A stretch of 63,491 bases of DNA, filler included, from Octopus bimaculoides (taxonomy: Eukaryota), in the NCBI RefSeq assembly GCF_001194135.2. It is 5 parts of 4 records of this genome, joined end to end, with 100 filler letters (N's around TTAATTAATTAA, not from the genome) between each part and the next. Parts side by side here need not be neighbours in the genome. Positions count along the whole stretch, not along the records: positions 46,285 to 57,005 come from NC_068985.1; 4 more parts are not named here. One strand, written 5' to 3'. The translations under genes were made by a program, and so were the position numbers. The notes below the pieces were generated by a model. It saw only the letters and a program-made list of their open reading frames with translations, did no database searches and was not told where the DNA came from. Of this stretch, positions 46,285-57,109 are shown one piece after another (the stretch's first letter is position 1; each line of letters begins with the position of its first letter).

Positions 46285-46296
46285 AGTGGAATGCAG
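46285..46296 (-). CDS. First 12 bases of a further LDLa C-terminal-half exon (CIPL...), truncated by an assembly gap
   Basis: ccttataacag|C TGC ATT CCA CT then N. Same acceptor context and reading as the 71-bp exons; lies 973 bp from its paralog at 47269. Confidence 0.8.
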
Positions 46297-46639
46297 CTGT
46301 TATAAGGAAATTTGTTTATTTAGAAATCAACTTAAGCAATACATATGTATGTATTTTGATTTATTGCTTTTGAGAAGGAAATATTTTTTGTCTTGTTGAT
46401 GAAAGAAAATATTCATTCTAGTATGTGATCAACAGAGAGATTCATTGCATGAAAAACCAGACACACTTTCACATTAACAGTTAATATCGGTAACAGAAAG
46501 ATATGTTCAACTTTCATAAAATTATAACAAGATTTGATTTTCCTCCCCCTTCTTTATAACATACTATTGAGACATATTCATTGCTTATAAATATTAAGAT
46601 GATTAATAGGGTGAGAAAGAAAAAAATGAGTTATCTTAC

Positions 46640-46790
46640 GTCTTTGTGGCTGTACAGTACATTGCACCAACTTTACATTTCAAGGAAAGAGTTGTTGTAA
46701 CTGGAGCTTGTGTAGTTGTAACTGGAGCTTGTGTAGTTGTAACTGGAGCTTGTGTTGTTGTAACTGTAGCTTTTGTAGTTGTAACTATAT
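46640..46790 (-). CDS. Internal exon (151 bp, phase 1-2): mucin-like linker plus LDLa N-terminal half, (D)IVTTTKATVTTTQAPVTTTQAPVTTTQAPVTTTLSLKCKVGAMYCTATK(T)
   Basis: ctgtttcag|AT ATA GTT ACA ... TGT ACA GCC ACA AAG AC|gtaaga. Open frame, 21-bp repeats encoding VTTTQAP, phases match both neighbouring exons. The ORF track shows only its antisense reading (46646..46885 +). Confidence 0.88.
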
Positions 46791-47198
46791 CTGAAACAGT
46801 CAAACAAATCTTTTACCGTTTATCATTTACTTGCTTCAGTCATTTGACTAAATCCTTCAAGCAGTGCCCCAGAAAGCTTAAGTAGAGATGGGTAAGAGAT
46901 ATAAAATGCAAAGTTTATGCTTCAGCAATGCCTGAAAACTCGATCAGTCAATCACTGGGAATTTAATGAGAATGTGATACATCTCAGCTATAATTCATTA
47001 GTGATATTTACACATGCTTAAAGCTTGACCAAAACTGAGATGAAACTTTACTATCAACTATAGGTTACTTTCACAAATAATACAGAATAATTTATTTTAC
47101 ACTCTTACAGGATTGTGGCAAGCTTGTTATAATCATATTTACAAATTCAAATATAGCCACTTGCATTGAATTAAAATCATTTCAGTTATTATACATAC

Positions 47199-47269
47199 CA
47201 CAATCTTTCTCATCTTCTCCATCAGAGCAGTCATTTTCTCCATCACATTTCCAACTCAGTGAAATGCAG
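47199..47269 (-). CDS. Internal exon (71 bp, phase 2-1): LDLa C-terminal half [23 protein letters not shown]
   Basis: ttttaacag|C TGC ATT TCA CTG AGT TGG AAA TGT GAT GGA GAA AAT GAC TGC TCT GAT GGA GAA GAT GAG AAA GAT TGT G|gtatgt. The acidic Ca-binding motif (W..D..D..D..E) is intact. Confidence 0.92.
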
Positions 47270-47616
47270 CTGTTAAAATGAAATTTTGTTTATATAGAAA
47301 TCAACTTAAGCAATACATATGTATGTATTTTGATTTATTGCTTTTGAGAAGGAAATATTTTTTGTCTAATTGATGAAAGAAGATATTCATTCTAGTATGT
47401 GATCAACAGAAAAATTCATTGCACGAAAAACCAGCGATGCTTTCACAGTAACAGCTAATATAGGTAACAGAAAGATGGGTTCACCTGGTATAAAATTATA
47501 ACAAGATTTTCTTTTCCTATCACTAATTCGTAACACATATGATTGAAACATATTCATTGGTTATAAAAGTTAAGATGGTTAATAGCGTGAGAGTAAAAAA
47601 AAACAAGTTATCTTAC

Positions 47617-47683
47617 GCCTTTGATGCTGAACAATACATTTCGTTAAGTAGACAATTCAAGGAAACAGTTGTTGTAACTGGAG
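47617..47683 (-). CDS. Internal exon (67 bp, phase 1-2): short Thr linker plus N-terminal half of an LDLa module, (A)PVTTTVSLNCLLNEMYCSASK(A)
   Basis: ttttcag|CT CCA GTT ... TGT CTA CTT AAC GAA ATG TAT TGT TCA GCA TCA AAG GC|gtaaga. Supplies Cys1 and Cys2 and joins in frame to 47199-47269 to complete a six-Cys LDLa. Confidence 0.85.
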
Positions 47684-47699
47684 CTGAAAAAGTCAAACA

Positions 47700-48095
47700 A
47701 ATTTCTTACCTCTTATCTTTTACTTATTTCAGTCATTTGACTAAATCCTTCCAGCAGTGCCCCAGTCATGCTGGGGTAGTGTTTGAAGGGTTCAATCAAA
47801 TAAATTGGCTCCAATCCTTATTTTTAAAACCTCATACTAATTCTATCAGTTGATTTTGTTGTACTGCTAAATTACAGGGACATTAACAAACCAACACTGG
47901 TTGTCAAATATTGGTGGAGGGACAAACACAAAGACACATAAACACACATGTATATTATACACAATGAGCTTCCAACCATCAACTAAATCCACTCACAAGG
48001 CATTGGATGGGCTGGGGCTATAGTGGAAGGCACTTGCCGAAGGTGCCCTGTAGTGGGACTGAAGCGGAAACCATATGGCTGCAAAGCTTCTTGCA
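47700..48095 (-). mobile_element. Near full-length SINE family B inside the intron upstream of exon 47617-47683
   Basis: Head (revcomp of gtagtgggactgaagcggaaaccatatgg), CA-repeat linker, and tail ttacttatttcagtcatttgact. Confidence 0.7.
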
Positions 48096-48279
48096 GAAGA
48101 TATAAAAATGAAAAATTAGAAGGATTACTTTTGTAATTTTAGTTTAAATGGGCTTTCTATGAAGTGGCATTTATGTTTTGTGTCTCTAATGATAAAGTGT
48201 GTCATTCTGTAGTTACTGTTTCATGCACATGTCAGATTTCTCTCGTTTAAGTTAATTTCTCACTTCTGACAAGGACTGC

Positions 48280-48660
48280 ATATTATTAGAGTTGACTTCG
48301 CCTTTCATCCTTTCAGGGTCAATAAATTAAGTATCAGTGAAACACTGGAGTTGATACAGTTCTATATTTAAGAGATGAGGAATTATTTACATTATTTACA
48401 TTTGATGGATATTCGTCCTCATCTTGTTTGTTGTTAACGCAACGTTTCGGCTGATATACCCTCCAGCCTTTGTCAGGTGTTTTGGGGAAATTTCGAACCT
48501 GGGTTCTCATTCCTATCGATGTTACTATTATTATTAACAACAAACAAGATGAGGACGAATATCCGTCAAATGTAAATAATGTAAATACTGGAGTTGATGT
48601 AATCAACTTGTCCCCTTCCAACAAATTTCAGACCATGTGCCTTTAGTAGAAAGGATTATT
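48280..48660 (+). mobile_element. SINE family A interrupted by a 231-bp Penelope-type terminal fragment
   Basis: 12-bp duplication actggagttgat at 48344-48355 and 48587-48598; 54-bp inverted arms at 48384-48437 and 48534-48587. Confidence 0.75.
48436..48482 (-). ncRNA. Degenerate minimal hammerhead ribozyme (Penelope-like element terminus)
   Basis: Revcomp AACAC-CUGACAA-A-GGCUG-gaggguauau-CAGCC-GAAAC-GUU-GCGUU. Stem II is perfect and the AACGUU palindrome is present, but the core has G8>A. Confidence 0.6.
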
Positions 48661-49232
48661 AGAGTACTGTTTAGATATATGTTATGGTACACCAATTACA
48701 CACACTTGCATGCATATATATATATATANNNNNNNNNNNNNNNNNNNNNNNNNNNNNNNNNNNNNNNNNNNNNNNNNNNNNNNNNNNNNNNNNNNNNNNN
48801 NNNNNNNNNNNNNNNNNNNNNNNNNNNNNNNNNNNNNNNNNNNNNNNNNNNNNNNNNNNNNNNNNNNNNNNNNNNNNNNNNNNNNNNNNNNNNNNNNNNN
48901 NNNNNNNNNNNNNNNNNNNNNNNNNNNNNNNNNNNNNNNNNNNNNNNNNNNNNNNNNNNNNNNNNNNNNNNNNNNNNNNNNNNNNNNNNNNNNNNNNNNN
49001 NNNNNNNNNNNNNNNNNNNNNNNNNNNNNNNNNNNNNNNNNNNNNNNNNNNNNNNNNNNNNNNNNNNNNNNNNNNNNNNNNNNNNNNNNNNNNNNNNNNN
49101 NNNNNNNNNNNNNNNNNNNNNNNNNNNNNNNNNNNNNNNNNNNNNNNNNNNNNNNNNNNNNNNNNNNNNNNNNNNNNNNNNNNNNNNNNNNNNNNNNNNN
49201 NNNNNNNNNNNNNNNNNNNNNNNNNATATATA

Positions 49233-49901
49233 TACGTGGAGAAGTCAAAAGTTATCTGCACTTTTGCCATAACATATCTTTATTATTGTCACAATGCCTT
49301 CTGCTCATATGTGCTTATAGTTGGTACTATTGTAATCATGTGACTGAAGTTTGACTCTGATCATGCCATTTTTCTTTCTGGCTTTATAGTGTGAGCATGG
49401 CTGCTCCACTAATAATGTGCACCAAAGAAGAACAAAGAGCAGTGATCCAAGAGATGGTAATGGTGATCTGATTCACCATTACCATCTCTCGAACTTGCTG
49501 AATATTCTTGTCAGTGGTGGAGGTTGACAGGCATCCTGCTCCCTCTTCATGTGTCAGGCTTATCCAGCCACTTTAAACTCCACTCACTCCACTCACGCAC
49601 TTCTACATGATAGTACACTGTCCCTATATTGTGCTAAAAGCCTCTGATGAATTTCAGAAACAGACACACCTTCCAACCAGAAAAATTAAATCACTACTCT
49701 TTGCTCTTCTTTGGTGCACATTGCTTGTAGAATGGCTATGCTTACACTGTAAAGCCAGAAAGATAGCGCAATCAGGCTCAAACTTCAATCATGTGATCAC
49801 AATAGTACCAACTATAAGCCTGGATGTGCAGAAGGCAGTGTGACAACAATAAAGACAAGTTATTGTGAAAGTGTGGATAATTTTTGGCTTCCCCTCATGT
49901 A
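49233..49901 (-). mobile_element. Mariner-derived element with two convergent 5' ends (~215-bp inverted arms)
   Basis: Left tacgtggagaagtcaaaagttatctgcac...atgtgcaccaaagaagaacaaagagcagtgat; right arm is the reverse complement (tacatgaggggaagccaaaaattatccacac...MCTKEEQRVVI). The middle encodes the transposase HTH region on the minus strand. Confidence 0.88.
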
Positions 49902-49904
49902 TAT

Positions 49905-50330
49905 AAAGCGCTACATTCACACACATTTTGACTTGTGATTTCTCCAAACTTCCCACACATTCTGTACAATGGCAATTTGATCATTTTGTTGATGTGGAAT
50001 TTTACATAGTTAGTTCTTAATGCTTGCTCTTGAGCAGCACAAACAAGAGCTTCCACCAACTTCTTTCAAATCTCCCTTACTCATTCAGTCCCTTGTCATG
50101 TGTTTGTCTATCTTTCCAAAATTAGAGTCTTTATCCATATCTATTTGGAACTGTCCATGCATCACCTTGTCTTTCAACTCTGCAGCCTTCTTTTCAGCTT
50201 CATTTGTTTTGAACTCTTCAGTGTTCAAGGTCAATCTGTATGAAGCAGTTTTATTTTGATAACTGGCATGAATTGTTATGATGCAGGTAACTCTTTCCCA
50301 ATTTTCCAATAATGTCAGCTAACTTTTTCT
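49905..50330 (-). mobile_element. Dong/R4-like LINE fragment
   Basis: KDKVMHGQFQ...KGDLK...YRMCGKFGE (HGQF motif and zinc-knuckle start). Confidence 0.65.
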
Positions 50331-50841
50331 CAGTAACAGTTTTAATCTTTTTGCTCTCCAGTGCCATTGACAGTCCACCTATATACATCAAGCTATTCCT
50401 GATCCCAGAGGAAAGAAAGATAGAAATGATACCAGTGAAATTTGAACTCAGAACATTAATAAAAAGACAACTAAATATCAACATGACTATGAATTCAATG
50501 ACTATGGAAGAAAAACAGATAAGGTAAAAATTTTTTTAATATATTAGTTATGGAGATTTCACTAAAGTGGATTTAATCAGTAATATTTTATTTAACCCTG
50601 TGTGAAATGTATGAACATGTAAAGAGTATGACTTTATTCTCAATCACCTTCTATAGTTCTTGAGGCAGTAATATTTAGTATTCAGAATTGGTTGTCCTTT
50701 GGAACTTCCCAACAATTATGAACTGCTTGACACTGCAGAATTTGTGGAAGTACTGTAGAAATGATTTAACTGCCAACATAAATACCAAAGTTTTACATTA
50801 TTTACATTTGACGGATATTTGTCCTCATGCTGTTTGTTGTT

Positions 50842-50888
50842 AACACAACGTTTTGGCTGATATACCCTCCAGCCTTCATGAGGTGTCT
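50842..50888 (-). ncRNA. Second degenerate minimal hammerhead ribozyme copy
   Basis: Revcomp GACAC-CUCAUGA-A-GGCUG-gaggguauau-CAGCC-AAAAC-GUU-GUGUU. Stem I (5 bp) and stem II are intact; the core has G5>C and G12>A. Confidence 0.55.
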
Positions 50889-50959
50889 TGGAGAAATTTC
50901 AAACCTGGGTTCTCATTCCTAAGGCATTTTTCGATGTTGTTGTCGTTGTTATTATTATC

Positions 50960-51052
50960 ATTAATATTATTATTCAGGTCACTGCCTGGAATCGAACTTG
51001 CAATCTTGGGGTTAGTAGCCCATGCTCTTAACCACAACACCATATGCCTGTG
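50960..51052 (-). mobile_element. tRNA-derived SINE head (family E) abutting the Penelope-type terminus
   Basis: Revcomp ggcatatggtgttgtggttaagagcatgggctactaaccccaagattgcaagttcgattccaggcagtgacctgaataataat. Confidence 0.65.
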
Positions 51053-51639
51053 GGCAATTATGGAGTGAATTTTAGGGCTTATATTTTTCTATCCTTCCCG
51101 AATACCGATTCCCATAGTGTTTTCCGTACACCTAGGGCAGAGAAACTCGTTGTATGCATTCCCAGNNNNNNNNNNNNNNNNNNNNNNNNNNNNNNNNNNN
51201 NNNNNNNNNNNNNNNNNNNNNNNNNNNNNNNNNNNNNNNNNNNNNNNNNNNNNNNNNNNNNNNNNTATATTTACTGATCTTGTCAAATTTTTTCGCCGCT
51301 ATATTATGATCACAGAGAATACTCATGTCAATTAATTAACACGTCTTCTTTGTCTGATCTTTGATAATAATATCTTATTATTATTATTATTATAATTATT
51401 ATTATTATTATCATCATCTTCTTTCAATTCTGTTTCCCTTTCTTGCTGAGTGTCTTCCTGACACCTAGGGCAGAGAAACATACTGTATACATTGATAGGC
51501 CATTAAAATTAACACACCAGATTGTTTATTTACAAAGTCATGTGACAGAGAAAAAGGGGAAGAAAGACAGAGAGAAAAAGGAAAAAAAAGAAATAAAAAG
51601 TAAACAAAAAATAAAGGGGAAAAAGGGAAAGAAAATTCA

Positions 51640-52800
51640 CAGCAACAATGCTCTTCTCAATACATGTGATGTACCAGTTGAGACAAACTTTTGCAATTCC
51701 TGCATAAATGGTAAGCCAGGGATCATTCCTAAATAATTTTCAGTTCCTTTTTTGATCATTACAAGTGCTCCTACAATCATTGGTATTGTAACTGTCTTGA
51801 GATGCCACATCTTTTCGATTTCAATCAGCAAATCTTTATATTTTCTAAGCTTAGCAAATTCTTTTGTTGAGATATTATGGTCACAGGGTATGCTCATGTC
51901 TATCAATAAACAGACTTTATTGTTTTGGTCTTTCACAACAATATCTGGTTTATTTGCTTTGATGGTTCAGTCTGTATGTACTGGAAAATCCCAAAGAATC
52001 ATTAGATTTTCTCCCTCAGTTACAGCCTCAGGGTGATGCTTGTACCATTTGTCAGCTGCTTTGATTTTATAATCCTGACACATTATCCAATGTAGATATT
52101 GGCCCACTATGTCATGTCTTGATTTGTACTCTACAGGTGCTAAAACCTTACACCCAGAGATTAGCTGGTCCACTGCTTCAAGTTCTGGGTCAATAGGCTC
52201 TGATCTTGAGCAGCCAAGATAAAGCCTTAACTCTCTGCTTTTAGCCCTGAGTTCCGTAGCCACAGATGAGTGTGCTTCTGGTTAACATCAGTTTGTTTGT
52301 TATGAGCCACATATTTGCCATGCAGCAGTTTTTGTTCCTACTTAACAGCCAATTGTTCAAACGCATTTTGCTTTGCTATTGATTTCATCTTTGCAACTAC
52401 AGTTGTGGCATTTCCCTCGTGCTGTTCAACCTGAGTGTTATGCATAAACTCACTTGAAAATTTTTTGCTCTCCTTCATAACAGAATGAAGCTCCTTACAT
52501 CTTTCAGGGTTTTCAACGACCTTTAGCATCCGGTCGTTAGATATTTCAAGATATTTTGTCGGTCGGTCCAATTGTGGTAGTTTTGTAAGAGATTTCAAAT
52601 TGGATCGTGCATTTAACTCAGATTTTAGGACTGCTCGAACTCTCCTGTAACATTCCTTCCTAGTCTTCTCTTTCATACTTGCATGCTGAATGCCAGAGCC
52701 CTCATTTATTCTGAGGTATTTGTAAGTTTGTTCCTGCTCAAGTTCTTTTATGACTGTGTCAGCATTCAACACCACTGAATGTGAGGTCTTCAATTTCCTT
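51640..52800 (-). mobile_element. Dong/R4-like LINE, RT C-terminus to end
   Basis: YKYLRINEG...KECYRRVRAVLKSELNA; LAPVEYKSRHDIVGQYLHW; ILWDFPVHTD; CLLIDMSIPCDHNISTKEFAKLRKYKDLLIEIEKMW...HVLRRALLL*. Confidence 0.88.
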
Positions 52801-52917
52801 TTCTAGAAAGTGGCCTTGGCACATTTATCAAGACCAGATATGTGTAAATATATATGTGTGTGTGTACAAGTGAATGTGTATGTGTGAGTGAATGTGTGTG
52901 TGTACGTGTGTACATGC

Positions 52918-52968
<51 letters not shown>

Positions 52969-54184
52969 TGTGTGGAGGGTAGTGTTTGTAGCTTCTTGTC
53001 TTGGCATCATGTTGTAGATATATTGATAAATGAGTGTCATCATCATATAAGCAGTGTCCTTCATTTACAATCTGCCATGAAAACATGTCTCGCCAAGAAA
53101 AATTAAGACCTTGCTTGGAAACAGTTGAGGGGTGGCAACTATAAAGAGCATCTGGTTGTAGAAATTTGTCACAAAAAATTTCTCATGACCCAGACTATAA
53201 GAAGAAAGAGGACATTAAAACAATGATGGTGATATGGATGATGACATGCATTTATATATTTTGTGCTTTTAATTTATCTGATAGTCATAATGTTTTTAAT
53301 ATGTATTAATAGGACATTTTACCTCACCCCTCATTTTGATTTGTGTACATCACTAAATTCCTTGTAATCCCTTTTGTAACATGTTGTATTGAATGGATGG
53401 GTCAGTCTTGCAAGTAGAGGGGCAAAATTAGTATTATTATTCTTGATGGAATCATTAGCAGACTAGACAAAATGGTTTGCAGTTTAGTTATGATAAAATC
53501 ATCCCAAGGTCGATTTCAACTTTTCTGGGCTAATGAAATAAAGCACTGGGGTCAATGCAATCAACTGTGTATCACCCCCATCTCTCTTTAAAAAGAAAAT
53601 TCTGATAATGTACTTATGTTAGAAACAATTATTATTTGATAATAATCAGATAAGTATTTTGAGGCTCTGGTATATTTCATTTAGAAATAGATTTTGAAGT
53701 TATATTTTTTTGTTTGTTTCAGTCTTCAGAGTCCAACCATGCTAGAGTATCACCTTGAAGGGTTTAGCCTAACAACTTGACCCCTGTACTTATTCTAAGT
53801 CTGGTAGTTAATCCATAGGTCTCTTTTGCTAAACTGCTAAGTTACAGAGAATTNNNNNNNNNNNNNNNNNNNNNNNNNNNNNNNNNNNNNNNNNNNNNNN
53901 NNNNNNNNNNNNNNNNNNNNNNNNNNNNNNNNNNNNNNNNNNNNNNNNNNNNNNNNNNNNNNNNNNNNNNNNNNNNNNNNNNNNNNNNNNNNNNNNNNNN
54001 NNNNNNNNNNNNNNNNNNNNNNNNNNNNNNNNNNNNNNNNNNNNNNNNNNNNNNNNNNNNNNNNNNNNNNNNNNNNNNNNNNNNNNNNNNNNNNNNNNNN
54101 NNNNNNNNNNNNNNNNNNNNNNNNNNNNNNNNNNNNNNNNNNNNNNNNNNNNNNNNNNNNNNNNNNNNNNNNNNNNNNNNNNNN

Positions 54185-55170
54185 TGGAAGTCTGATGGTG
54201 CAAGGTCAGGAGAGTAGGGGGTAAAGAGGAAGTATTTCATAGATACAGGAGAGTGCTTTCATTTGGACAACATGAGCATTGTGACCTGGGGTGTAGTTTT
54301 GGAGGAGGGGACTCCTTTGGTCAGCATGCCACTCCTCTTTGCTTCGATGGCATCCTGCAATTTCTGCAGCAGGAAAGCATAATATGCCCTGTTAATTGTG
54401 GTGCCATTTGCCAGGAAATCCATCATCACTATTCTGCACTGGTCCCAAAAGACTGTGAGCATTAACTTGCCTGCTGAGGGTTGGATGCAAGTGTTCTTTG
54501 GAGGTGGTGAGTTATCATGTTTCCATTGCTTTGACTGGATTTTAGTCCCAGGATAATAGTGATGGACCCATGTTTCATCCTCTGAGGTAAGTCTGCTGAA
54601 AAAGTCCTCCTCATTTTCTTGGCACATTGCCAAAAGAGCCTGGGAACAATTGACTTGTTCCTGCTTCTGAAAAGGTGTGAGCATTCAGGGAATCCATCAA
54701 GCAGACAACTTCTACATGTACAAATGGTCTGGAATGATTTTTCCATGGATCCTACACATATCTTCACTTCTTGAGCTGGTTGCTGAATAGTTATACAGCG
54801 ATCCTCTAAAATGGCAGCTTTCACTTTATGGATGGTGTTGTCATCATTGGCAGAATGTGGTCATCTAGGAATAGGAGCACTGATGTCCAACCACATTTGA
54901 ACTGGTGATGTCAATGCTTGACTACATCGTATGATGGTGCATCATCACCATATACTTCTTTCATCTCATCGAAAATCTCTTTTGGTGTACAACCTTTCAA
55001 TTATAAGAATCTGATCACTGATCTGTATTCAACTGCCACCATTATAACACCTTAGTCCACTTTAGCAGCCATAAAAGACAAACGAATACTAGTGTAAAGC
55101 TGCAAATTAAAATGTGACATGTAGAGACATGTATAATTATTTCTGTACAAGTTCCATTTCCTGCAATACA
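54185..55170 (-). mobile_element. Mariner transposon, frameshifted transposase (D34D family)
   Basis: MVAVEYRSVIRF..., WVP-like motif then EDETWVHHY, KLMLTVFWD, PYSPDLAPSDF; both ends run into N gaps. Confidence 0.92.
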
Positions 55171-56099
55171 NNNNNNNNNNNNNNNNNNNNNNNNNNNNNN
55201 NNNNNNNNNNNNNNNNNNNNNNNNNNNNNNNNNNNNNNNNNNNNNNNNNNNNNNNNNNNNNNNNNNNNNNNNNNNNNNNNNNNNNNNNNNNNNNNNNNNN
55301 NNNNNNNNNNNNNNNNNNNNNNNNNNNNNNNNNNNNNNNNNNNNNNNNNNNNNNNNNNNNNNNNNNNNNNNNNNNNNNNNNNNNNNNNNNNNNNNNNNNN
55401 NNNNNNNNNNNNNNNNNNNNNNNNNNNNNNNNNNNNNNNNNNNNNNNNNNNNNNNNNNNNNNNNNNNNNNNNNNNNNNNNNNNNNNNNNNNNNNNNNNNN
55501 NNNNNNNNNNNNNNNNNNNNNNNNNNNNNNNNNNNNNNNNNNNNNNNNNNNNNNNNNNNNNNNNNNNNNNNNNNNNNNNNNNNNNNNNNNNNNNNNNNNN
55601 NNNNNNNNNNNNNNGCTCATAGACAAACTGATTATTTTGAAACTAAATCACCAAAAGTGAGTAAAAAATCACATCACTGAAATAAAACCAAAATATGTGA
55701 GTTGCTGACCCAAGATCTACAATCGTATGTATACCATCCCAGGAACTCAAATTTAGACAAATATGGTAATTAGCATTTCCTTAGCACATAATTTTATTTT
55801 ATTCAGGTTTATTTATTTAGTGAGAGAATAAAAATGTACCTTAAATATATGAAAAACATATTTTTTATAAACTTCAATAGTGACCCCTAGAACATAAAAG
55901 TACATTTCTAAAGCCATTTGTTTAGCTCCCAAATGTTTCTGCTTTTCTCTGCCATAATACTAAATGCTTTTGTTTATGCATCCACTTGTTAAATAACTGA
56001 AATCAATTTCTTTCATGATGCCTGTAACTATGATAAATTTTCTCTGATCATATTTTTCTACAATAAATGTCACTTTAAATTTTATATGAATGCACTTAC

Positions 56100-56170
56100 C
56101 ACAACCCTTTTCATCTTCTCCATCAGGGCAGTCATTTTCTCCATCACATTTCCAAGAAATTGGGATGCAT
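56100..56170 (-). CDS. Internal exon (71 bp, phase 2-1) encoding the C-terminal half of an LDL-receptor class A module: [23 protein letters not shown]
   Basis: Reverse complement reads ttataatag|A TGC ATC CCA ATT TCT TGG AAA TGT GAT GGA GAA AAT GAC TGC CCT GAT GGA GAA GAT GAA AAG GGT TGT G|gtaagt. Canonical splice sites; matches LDLa consensus C-I-x3-W-x-C-D-G-x2-D-C-x-D-G-x-D-E-x2-C. Paralogous to exon 47199-47269. Confidence 0.9.
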
Positions 56171-57109
56171 CTATTATAATATTTTTACATGTATATATTA
56201 GAAATTAACTTTAACAATGCACATTTTCTTTTGTATTTAGTGAAAGGACTTGTAAATTTAAAACATTTGTGAATTTTCAGGTCCTCCAAGAATGGTGATG
56301 TTAATAATGTATTTGTACAAGTTGAACTTTTGGTGCCAGTATTAAAACTGTGTGCAGATAGGAAATTGTGAATAACTGCATTTTAGTGAATAGCTTGAGA
56401 GATGTTAAATACAGTAGATACAATGAATGAAAAAGAAGCAGGTGCATATATAAGGATTTGTTGAAAATGGTACTCATCTCGTTTTCTGAGGAGTAGTAGC
56501 TGTATTAGGGGCAGAAGTAAATAAAGGAAGAGCGGAAACATAATATTTATAACTTGTGATTACAGCATGATGGTGGTGGTGGTGGTGGTTAATTTTTACT
56601 AATTAGCAGATGATCTTTTTCATTGGATGCAGCCTAAGATGTTGAGAGTGTAGCAGCAACAATGTCCCAAATCAGTGAACAATATTCTGCTGTAAGTTAC
56701 ATCTGAGCTTTGTTATGAGTCAAAACCCTTTCACAGTGGAGGTATTTTGTTGCTTCAGATGAGTATCCCAGTCTTTGAGACACAGTTTTGTTAACATTAT
56801 AGATTAATAATTTGCAATGACTGAGATATTTAGTGATGTGTCATACATGAATACAGAAAGGTGTTACATGAGATGACATTTTTCCCTTTTTGTGATATGT
56901 ATAAGGATTATGTTCTGGTATAGTTGAAGGAGACTGAGCCATCATGTCTCTACTGATGCATTTGCAGTTTCTGTTTCTTAAAATAATATAAGCACGTGTG
57001 TCTATNNNNNNNNNNNNNNNNNNNNNNNNNNNNNNNNNNNNNNNNNNNNTTAATTAATTAANNNNNNNNNNNNNNNNNNNNNNNNNNNNNNNNNNNNNNN
57101 NNNNNATAT

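Follow-up and report, generated by a model that had tools for sequence, protein, structure and literature searches.

A probable partial, inverted copy of a mosaic serine-protease gene carrying tandem linker-LDLa cassettes in Octopus bimaculoides

The window analysed here, a stretch of 63,491 nucleotides joined from parts of the Octopus bimaculoides genome, contains between positions 46,285 and 57,005 a run of short exons encoding LDLa modules that alternate with Thr-rich linkers. This piece is probably part of a second, inverted and partial copy of a Tequila/Sp22D-type serine-protease gene, in which a cassette comprising a linker and the fifth LDLa module (LDLa-5) has been tandemly amplified. 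The reading is built on the exon structure, the identity of the domains, the cassette counts, the pattern of constraint, and the paralogy and collinearity of the piece with a gene of the Tequila/Sp22D/neurotrypsin type. The original prediction had described positions 46,285 to 56,170 as a hidden gene without a name, encoding an LDLa-mucin; the public models XP_052823984.1/XP_014784323.1 and UPI0006952FA1 cover the locus, which descends from the interior of a mosaic serine-protease gene and runs collinear with it. Three sequences were compared, including (i) the window locus (L001), (ii) the sister locus on the same chromosome, which carries the parent protease gene (L002), and (iii) a gap-free contig of O. 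sinensis (L003).

Exons, LDLa modules and the tandem cassette array

The piece is 100% identical to O. bimaculoides CM046605.1 (GCA_001194135.2) at ~22.793-22.804 Mb, with coinciding gaps, and corresponds to L001 635-11355. Its assembled part amounts to ~10.7 kb, flanked in the chromosome record by a gap of 634 N upstream of position 57005 and by a 6-kb gap of 6,048 N (L001 11356-17403) that starts at the other edge of the piece. Five exons lie on the minus strand, each preceded by AG and followed by GT wherever the donor is visible, the last one being cut by the edge; their phases chain, and the spliced frame is stop-free and yields the very peptide of the original prediction, whose exons and splice borders are confirmed.

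These exons comprise (i) exon B0 (56100..56170), the C-terminal half of an LDLa module, entered in phase 2 and left in phase 1; (ii) exon A1 (47617..47683), a 10-residue Thr-rich linker, APVTTTVSLN, followed by the N-terminal LDLa half CLLNEMYCSASKA; (iii) exon B1 (47199..47269), a C-terminal LDLa half that differs from the parent-gene exon at 1 of 71 nt; (iv) exon A2 (46640..46790), a 38-residue linker, DIVTTTKATVTTT(QAPVTTT)3LSLK, with 53% Pro/Thr/Ser, followed by the N-terminal LDLa half CKVGAMYCTATKT; and (v) the first 12 nt of exon B2 (46285..46296, CIPL...), cut at the edge of the piece where the 6-kb gap begins. The joined peptide ends (QAPVTTT)3LSLK-CKVGAMYCTATKTCIP, and a 21-nt tandem repeat on the minus strand (46694-46786, 4.4 copies, 94% matches) encodes the (VTTTQAP)n stretch of A2. 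Exon B0 is the C-terminal half of LDLa-2 of the parent protease, outside the array: its amino acids are identical to residues 43-65 of XP_052823985.1, the block around it shows 96.8-98.9% identity to L002 and 93.6% to O. sinensis, and the introns on either side of it bear no relation to the tandem-unit introns (~48% identity). Regex and tblastn scans found no N-terminal half-exon in the 835 bp upstream of 56170, an absence to be expected since the corresponding O. sinensis intron measures 2.4 kb.

Three of the four junctions originally proposed (47617/47269, 47199/46790 and 46640/46296) lie within continuous sequence. The fourth, 56100/47683, is phase-compatible and possible because every cassette has the same phases, and would represent a deletion-type join relative to the orthologue; it is not established, because a 100-N gap of unstated length lies in the transposon-derived fill between the two exons and because two LDLa modules of the orthologue would be skipped.

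By every sequence and fold comparison made, the segment is a member of the LDLa family. The spliced peptide matches Pfam Ldl_recept_a (PF00057) in two stretches at E = 4.9e-20, its 71.9 bits exceeding the curated threshold of 24.1, which bears out the LDLa modules of the original prediction, and one module alone matches the solved LDLa modules of VLDLR, LDLR, CD320 and LRP2. Every unit displays the spacing C-x6-C-x5(6)-C-x6-C-x5-C-x9-C, with a Tyr before Cys2, and the Cys columns are invariant in an alignment with 31 homologues. Every B exon encodes W-K-C-D-G-[EQ]-N-D-C-[SP]-D-G-E-D-E, comprising the Trp of the calcium cage and the motif C-D-G-x-x-D-C-x-D-G-x-D-E, which aligns with the cage of solved LDLa modules; the calcium-ligand residues are assigned from the established structures of LDLR module 5. 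An AlphaFold2 model gives a predicted local distance difference test (pLDDT) of 87-95 for the modules and 41-57 for the linkers, so that the beads-on-a-string layout first envisaged holds, and the best Foldseek matches are the LDLa modules of VLDLR, CD320, LRP2 (megalin) and ApoER2 (E = 3e-9 to 1e-6).

Membership in the LDL receptor family proper (LDLR/VLDLR/LRP) is rejected: neither the fragment nor the full-length paralogue or orthologues contain a YWTD/EGF region, a transmembrane segment or an NPxY tail, and the full-length proteins end in a trypsin domain instead. Likewise, a 1:1 orthologue of LRP, SORL1, GRL101 or MALRD1, the alternative named in the original prediction, is not what was found. 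The LA repeats of the LDL receptor family share with the octopus modules the six Cys residues, the Trp/Asp/Glu cage and Thr residues just upstream of Cys1 of the next module, and in LDLR and VLDLR the O-glycans placed by GalNAc-T11 on the inter-module linkers are reported to raise ligand binding and uptake (PMC11745429). In contrast, the linkers of that family comprise ~4-5 residues, whereas those of the octopus are (VTTTxAx)n stretches of 10-38 residues, in proteins with no EGF/YWTD propeller, transmembrane segment or NPxY tail. The mucin-like character attributed to the linkers stands as to composition and as to their role as spacers, but they do not form a mucin domain, being 10, 38, 16 and 24 residues long as compared with Pro/Thr/Ser domains of hundreds of residues; Thr clusters flanked by Pro, Ala and Val suggest that they may be densely O-GalNAc glycosylated. 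CD320, the transcobalamin receptor, also displays two LDLa modules, kept apart by a non-LDLa linker of greater length, and ranks with the best structural hits; it differs in that its linker has no Thr heptad repeat and in being a small membrane receptor, with no sign of shared descent beyond the domain.

Each LDLa module is split over two exons, an N-half exon that includes the linker where present (in phase 1, out phase 2) and a C-half exon that includes the calcium cage (in phase 2, out phase 1), and all five of the five stalk LDLa modules of O. sinensis are split at the identical position and phases. Because of this shared split and these phases, each exon pair constitutes a symmetric 1-1 cassette, which can therefore be repeated or deleted with the frame intact. 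The tandem units measure ~0.9-1.0 kb including introns, with at least four in L001 compared with one in L002 and one in O. sinensis, and the 6-kb gap has room for ~6 more of such size. Unit 1 (46875..47767, minus strand) is made up of exons A and B, the ~345-nt intron between them and a spacer intron, and corresponds to the one unit that the parent gene and O. sinensis each possess; unit 2 (46285..46872, minus strand) is partial. Past the window and beyond the 6-kb gap, L001 continues with cassettes A3/B3 and A4/B4 (units 3 and 4, L001 19240-22209), and then with an exon encoding DYTLDNFEKQDTNFIIDAFPKEVYVRIPLET, with a GTAAGT donor at its end, which is the first PAN exon (L001 23788-23880). 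The run from unit 4 to the PAN exon is gap-free in L001, as is that from the single unit to the PAN exon in L002. The A-B introns of the L001 units are 87.5-95.9% identical to each other; that of unit 1 shows 94.8% identity to its L002 equivalent and 91.3% identity to the O. sinensis one, and between L002 and O. sinensis the figure is ~91%. The linkers change in length by seven-residue steps (10, 38, 16 and 24 in L001; 24 in O. sinensis), and the peptide stretches specific to the array locus comprise DIVTTTKATVTTTQAPVTTTQAP...KCKVGAMYC and the PAN-exon variant AFPKEVY. The O. sinensis gene has a single cassette and no array, which supports the early suggestion of a lineage-specific element.

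The parent protease gene and the second locus

Only an exhaustive phmmer search revealed the relation to the protease gene; its query was the 31-residue peptide encoded by the first exon after the array, an exon that begins a PAN domain (Pfam PAN_1, E = 2.8e-7). This search retrieved, at 97-100% identity, the XP_052823984.1 model of the window locus (P0001), an O. bimaculoides "neurotrypsin" and the "svh-1-like" proteins of O. vulgaris and O. sinensis; a fourth match, P0034, is a 6660-residue cadherin-like repeat protein and was discarded as unrelated. A word-indexed search with the spliced peptide yielded, besides generic LDLa proteins, only the two fragment models of O. bimaculoides, missing the protease paralogue and orthologues, and a word-indexed search with a 40-residue query returned zero candidates, missing even the model of the locus itself.

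The parent is XP_052823985.1 / A0A0L8GWJ9, an 839-aa O. bimaculoides protein named "neurotrypsin", with orthologues named "serine protease svh-1-like" in O. sinensis (XP_029655255.1) and O. vulgaris (CAI9722755.1), which reach 1305 aa and match the 31-residue peptide at 97% identity; the O. vulgaris gene spans 118 kb. According to Pfam, the architecture of these proteases comprises SRCR, C-lectin, kringle, five LDLa, PAN, LDLa, SRCR, LDLa and SRCR modules, a Thr-rich stretch and a trypsin domain with an intact His/Asp/Ser triad, located in the parent protein within AAHC, DIAL and GDSGGP, and the VTTT linker occurs only once, before the fifth LDLa. In O. sinensis, the RefSeq isoforms XP_029655255.1, XP_036354950.1, XP_029655256.1 and XP_029655257.1 comprise 1177, 1175, 1160 and 1141 residues, respectively. 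The labels "svh-1" and "neurotrypsin" are automated names that reflect shared domains only and are not retained as statements of function; SVH-1 itself combines a PAN-like domain, a kringle and a protease (PMC11305532). Tequila (Drosophila), Sp22D (Anopheles) and their counterpart SP23 (Apis) are mosaic serine proteases of immune and neural type in the neurotrypsin group, and the parent octopus gene lies near the architecture reported for Apis SP23, which comprises a scavenger receptor, C-lectin, kringle, LDLa, PAN, two LDLa and a serine protease, together with low-complexity regions (PMC1761132). The octopus gene differs in having no chitin-binding domains, and the window fragment comprises only LDLa, linker and the start of PAN; the octopus-insect likeness is one of architecture.

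Collinearity between the window locus and the octopus protease (XP_052823985.1 and its orthologues) extends over the internal stretch from LDLa-2 to the first PAN exon. The two share exon split and phases, B0 is identical in amino acids, the PAN exon peptide differs by one residue between L001 and L002 (K vs R, AFPKEVY vs AFPREVY), and unit 1 corresponds to the only "VTTT linker + LDLa-5" cassette that the protease has. On the other hand, the window locus displays at least four cassettes versus one, its N-half loops are strongly diverged, LDLa-3 and LDLa-4 are not in the assembled sequence, and no SRCR, kringle, lectin or trypsin exon is visible, the assembled 10.7 kb containing none of the SRCR, kringle and C-lectin modules. 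XP_052823985.1 is encoded in L002 on the opposite strand, with its B0-like exon ~165 kb from that of the window, the two copies standing head to head. The downstream neighbour of L002 is a gene with a CDC27 domain, the same as in O. vulgaris and O. sinensis, which identifies L002 as the syntenic orthologue.

Between L001 and L002, the collinear blocks show 98.9% identity upstream of B0, 96.8% around B0, 90% over a shared mariner insertion, 97.2% in the block next after it and 98.4% around the PAN exon, with 90.9% between L001 unit 1 and the single L002 unit. L001 is also collinear with L003 32335-47347 on both sides of the array, at 85-94% identity; L001 is without L003 36873-41328, whereas L002 is without L003 41131-43356 and 44083-45507. 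In unique blocks the two loci diverge by 1-5%, as compared with a genome-wide heterozygosity of 0.08% in O. bimaculoides (PMC7656900) and a genome divergence of ~8% between O. bimaculoides and O. vulgaris (PMC6472339). Because of this divergence relative to heterozygosity and of the large deletions specific to each copy, L001 and L002 are taken to be two loci and not two alleles, and a haplotig, weighed on the same ratio of divergence to heterozygosity, is rated unlikely. In our reading, the window locus is a genuine segmental duplicate, partial and inverted, which would have arisen after the bimaculoides/sinensis split. Downstream of the first PAN exon, L001 enters a 9.6-kb gap, past which 296 bp match the protease gene further downstream at 86.5%, a match that could be a repeat.

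The interval between B0 and A1 (47684..56099, minus strand), handled in the original prediction as a single intron, measures 8.4 kb and contains all four gaps of the piece, a mariner pseudogene, remnants that resemble long interspersed nuclear elements (LINE-like) and repeats that resemble miniature inverted-repeat transposable elements (MITE-like); no exon is interrupted. L003 bridges three of the gaps collinearly, namely 55171-55614 (L003 33717-34067), 53854-54184 (L003 34994-36054) and 48729-49225 (L003 41953-42632), and O. sinensis is exon-free in those stretches. The 100-N gap at 51166-51265 is unbridgeable and lies within a transposon-derived fill (~49849-52898), which replaces 4.4 kb (L003 36873-41328) with four exons, which encode LDLa-3 and LDLa-4, in O. 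sinensis and L002.

Constraint among the units and competing explanations

All nine exon copies are open, with AG/GT borders, the acceptor of unit 3 having moved by 3 nt in frame. Cys1, Cys2 and the Tyr are invariant, and the C-half exons keep every Cys and the full calcium cage, with a proportion of nonsynonymous differences (pN) of 0.017-0.11 within the array versus a synonymous proportion (pS) of 0.27-0.56. When the L002 unit is compared with the O. sinensis unit, an orthologous pair, 8.9% of sites differ in the A-B intron, 5.6% in an 18-nt patch at the Cys1 loop and 2.8% in the C-half exon, the exons thus being less divergent than the intron; among the L001 units, the corresponding values are 4-12.5%, 17-44% and 5.6-12.7%. 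The hypervariable patch comprises the residues around Cys1 and beyond it, in the C1-C2 loop, and lies on the minus strand at 47640..47657 in exon A1 and at 46663..46680 in exon A2, where it reads KCKVGA and is the most divergent copy. Units 2 and 4 differ at 8/18 sites of the patch versus 14/340 of the intron (Fisher p = 1.6e-6), for a patch that is very short and was picked after seeing the data, and a short stretch of gene conversion, with an unseen unit as donor, might produce the same picture. As it stands, this pattern suggests diversifying selection or selection against homogenisation.

A partial copy of the protease gene, with its cassette amplified, would have arisen as follows. The protease gene would have been duplicated, the copy being visible from the C-half exon of LDLa-2 to at least the first PAN exon, and the cassette of Thr-rich linker and LDLa-5 would have multiplied tandemly as a genomic unit of ~0.9-1.0 kb. 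A similar origin is documented for human LPA, a duplicate of the mosaic serine-protease gene plasminogen that lost modules and in which a two-exon kringle IV-2 cassette multiplied tandemly as a genomic unit (PMC4378929); the likeness is one of analogy, not homology, since LPA repeats a kringle in place of LDLa, its unit measures 5.5 kb versus ~1 kb, and LPA is known to be expressed and variable in copy number. If the window copy is translated, each LDLa bead might bind Ca2+ via the Trp/Asp/Glu cage and capture basic ligand residues, and the (VTTTxAx)n stalks, probably O-glycosylated and extended, might space the beads for multivalent binding or as a targeting arm; in the parent protein, such an arm would target the protease zymogen. 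The window copy may still carry a signal peptide and a protease domain; its arm may sit on a protease, may be secreted by itself or may not be produced.

Several observations weigh against a duplicate of this kind. Regex and tblastn searches of the piece found neither LDLa-3 nor LDLa-4, transposon DNA standing in their place. No 5' exon, signal peptide or protease exon is visible for the window copy, which has gaps on both sides, and a PAN-to-trypsin query returned no second O. bimaculoides protein, although the same search also missed the O. vulgaris/O. sinensis cluster. RefSeq XP_052823984.1 uses an internal Met as start and a doubtful 13-residue last exon, and the assembly is a short-read draft in which one join is a 100-N gap of undefined length. 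In addition, the array compared with the O. sinensis unit (L003 43155-45569) shows 82-86% identity in its inner parts and 91-96% in its flanks, a contrast that a simple recent amplification does not predict. One possible reading of the contrast is that the array is older than the divergence of the species, with later losses in O. sinensis and in L002, whose deletion begins 128 bp past its C-half exon; another possible reading is that the internal units evolve faster.

A dead fragment of the same origin, untranslated, with the public models as annotation artefacts on exon-like relics, is a possible alternative and should be taken seriously even though it is not the one we favour. It would account for the lack of a visible start, signal peptide and downstream domains and for the internal Met of the RefSeq model, for the loss of two LDLa modules from an interval filled with transposons, for the conflict among public models over exon joining, for the lost canonical acceptor of unit 3 and for N-half loops that diverge at or above the intron rate. 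Yet the introns of the units differ by 4-12.5% while their exons keep frames, usable splice sites, all Cys residues and the calcium cage; pN in the C-half exons is well below pS, and neutral decay cannot give an 18-nt patch with 4-10 times the divergence of its intron. If the array arose in a functional gene before the duplication, these coding signals may be inherited and would say little on the present state of the copy.

An independent gene for a secreted LDLa-mucin, equipped with a promoter, signal peptide and stop codon of its own and functionally unrelated to any protease, would agree with the presence of the array of at least four linker-LDLa units at the window locus only, with the treatment of the locus as a separate gene in RefSeq and with the position of the copy on the strand opposite the protease gene, ~165 kb off. 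We consider it very unlikely: on either side of the array the locus runs parallel to the interior of the protease gene and takes in a PAN exon closed by a splice donor, neither a first exon nor a signal peptide turned up in the assembled sequence, and the 296 bp past the 9.6-kb gap match the protease again (86.5%, could be repeat). An assembly artefact, in which an alternative haplotype or a misplaced or misjoined scaffold of a single protease gene makes the copy number unreliable, is very unlikely. False duplicates often sit near their true counterpart, the draft was built from short reads and scaffolded later, gaps occur at matching positions in both loci, and the 100-N join has an adjoining out-of-order block (L001 6845-7387, 93.2% to L003 28935-29462). 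However, the copies diverge by 1-5% versus a heterozygosity of 0.08%, each has its own large deletions relative to O. sinensis, the sequence runs gap-free into the PAN exon from unit 4 in L001 and from the single unit in L002, and units 4-12.5% apart are not collapsed or duplicated reads of one unit.

With the window locus read as an amplified partial duplicate of the protease gene, a further proposal is rather doubtful and is put forward tentatively: if expressed, alone or on a second protease, the array might constitute a rapidly diversifying, copy-number-variable "natural avimer", with LDLa binding modules strung along glycosylated stalks and its Cys1-Cys2 loops kept different by selection, which would have originated in the bimaculoides lineage in the manner of apolipoprotein(a) and might serve in pathogen recognition or as a decoy. 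With the array expressed, the contrast of a conserved cage with a hypervariable N-terminal loop would suggest that selection favours diverse ligand specificities in an extracellular binding protein of an invertebrate; an unexpressed array would be a young gene relic of an ordinary kind, in a draft genome rich in repeats. The locus also offers a mollusc example of module shuffling by symmetric phase 1-1 exon pairs, comprising duplication, module loss and cassette multiplication.

Public gene models and repeats of the interval

Two public models overlap the locus, including (i) XP_052823984.1 (earlier XP_014784323.1), of 209 residues, named "very low-density lipoprotein receptor" in RefSeq and starting at a Met within exon A1, and (ii) the older UPI0006952FA1, of 204 residues. 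To judge from the sequence, the RefSeq name reflects the domain only, and this misleading label is corrected here to that of a protease gene fragment, not a lipoprotein receptor. Exon joining differs among the two public models and the original prediction: one model omits A3 and the other omits A2, exon A1 is present in both, and the exon at 56170-56100 is used by neither. XP_052823984.1 reads ATKT followed by CIPLIWK (L001 11344-11355 and 19747-19820, past the window edge), which requires either a non-AG acceptor or the joining of the 12 nt of B2, over the 6-kb gap, with the remainder of B3. Unit 3 has lost the canonical CAG acceptor, and the AG located 3 nt upstream, as used in the older model, inserts an extra Asn.

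Within the B0-A1 interval, the segment 50253-50795 beside the 100-N join (L001 6845-7387, 93.2% to L003 28935-29462) is out of order, its O. sinensis counterpart being upstream of B0; it may stem from a rearrangement or a wrong join, or may represent a young repeat. LINE-like remnants of open reading frames at 51637-52793 (minus strand) and 52853-52974, Pfam-negative and adjoining a (TG)n/(CA)n microsatellite, belong to the transposon fill. A short interspersed element is present in two related copies, one at ~48384-48587, with inverted termini of ~54 bp that give it a MITE-like look, and one at ~50790-50950, adjoined by a tRNA-like sequence for which ARAGORN and Rfam are negative; the same two tools found no tRNA and no Rfam match in the whole piece. 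At 54186-55170 (minus strand) lies a Mos1/mariner transposase pseudogene (Pfam Transposase_1, E = 2.3e-17; HTH_48, E = 1.2e-6) with many stops, cut by the gap at 53854-54184; the insertion is also present in L002 and O. sinensis (~90%) and is therefore older than the species split. Upstream of B0, a 324-bp intron segment (56323-56646) is present in L001 and O. sinensis and deleted in L002, providing a copy-specific marker.

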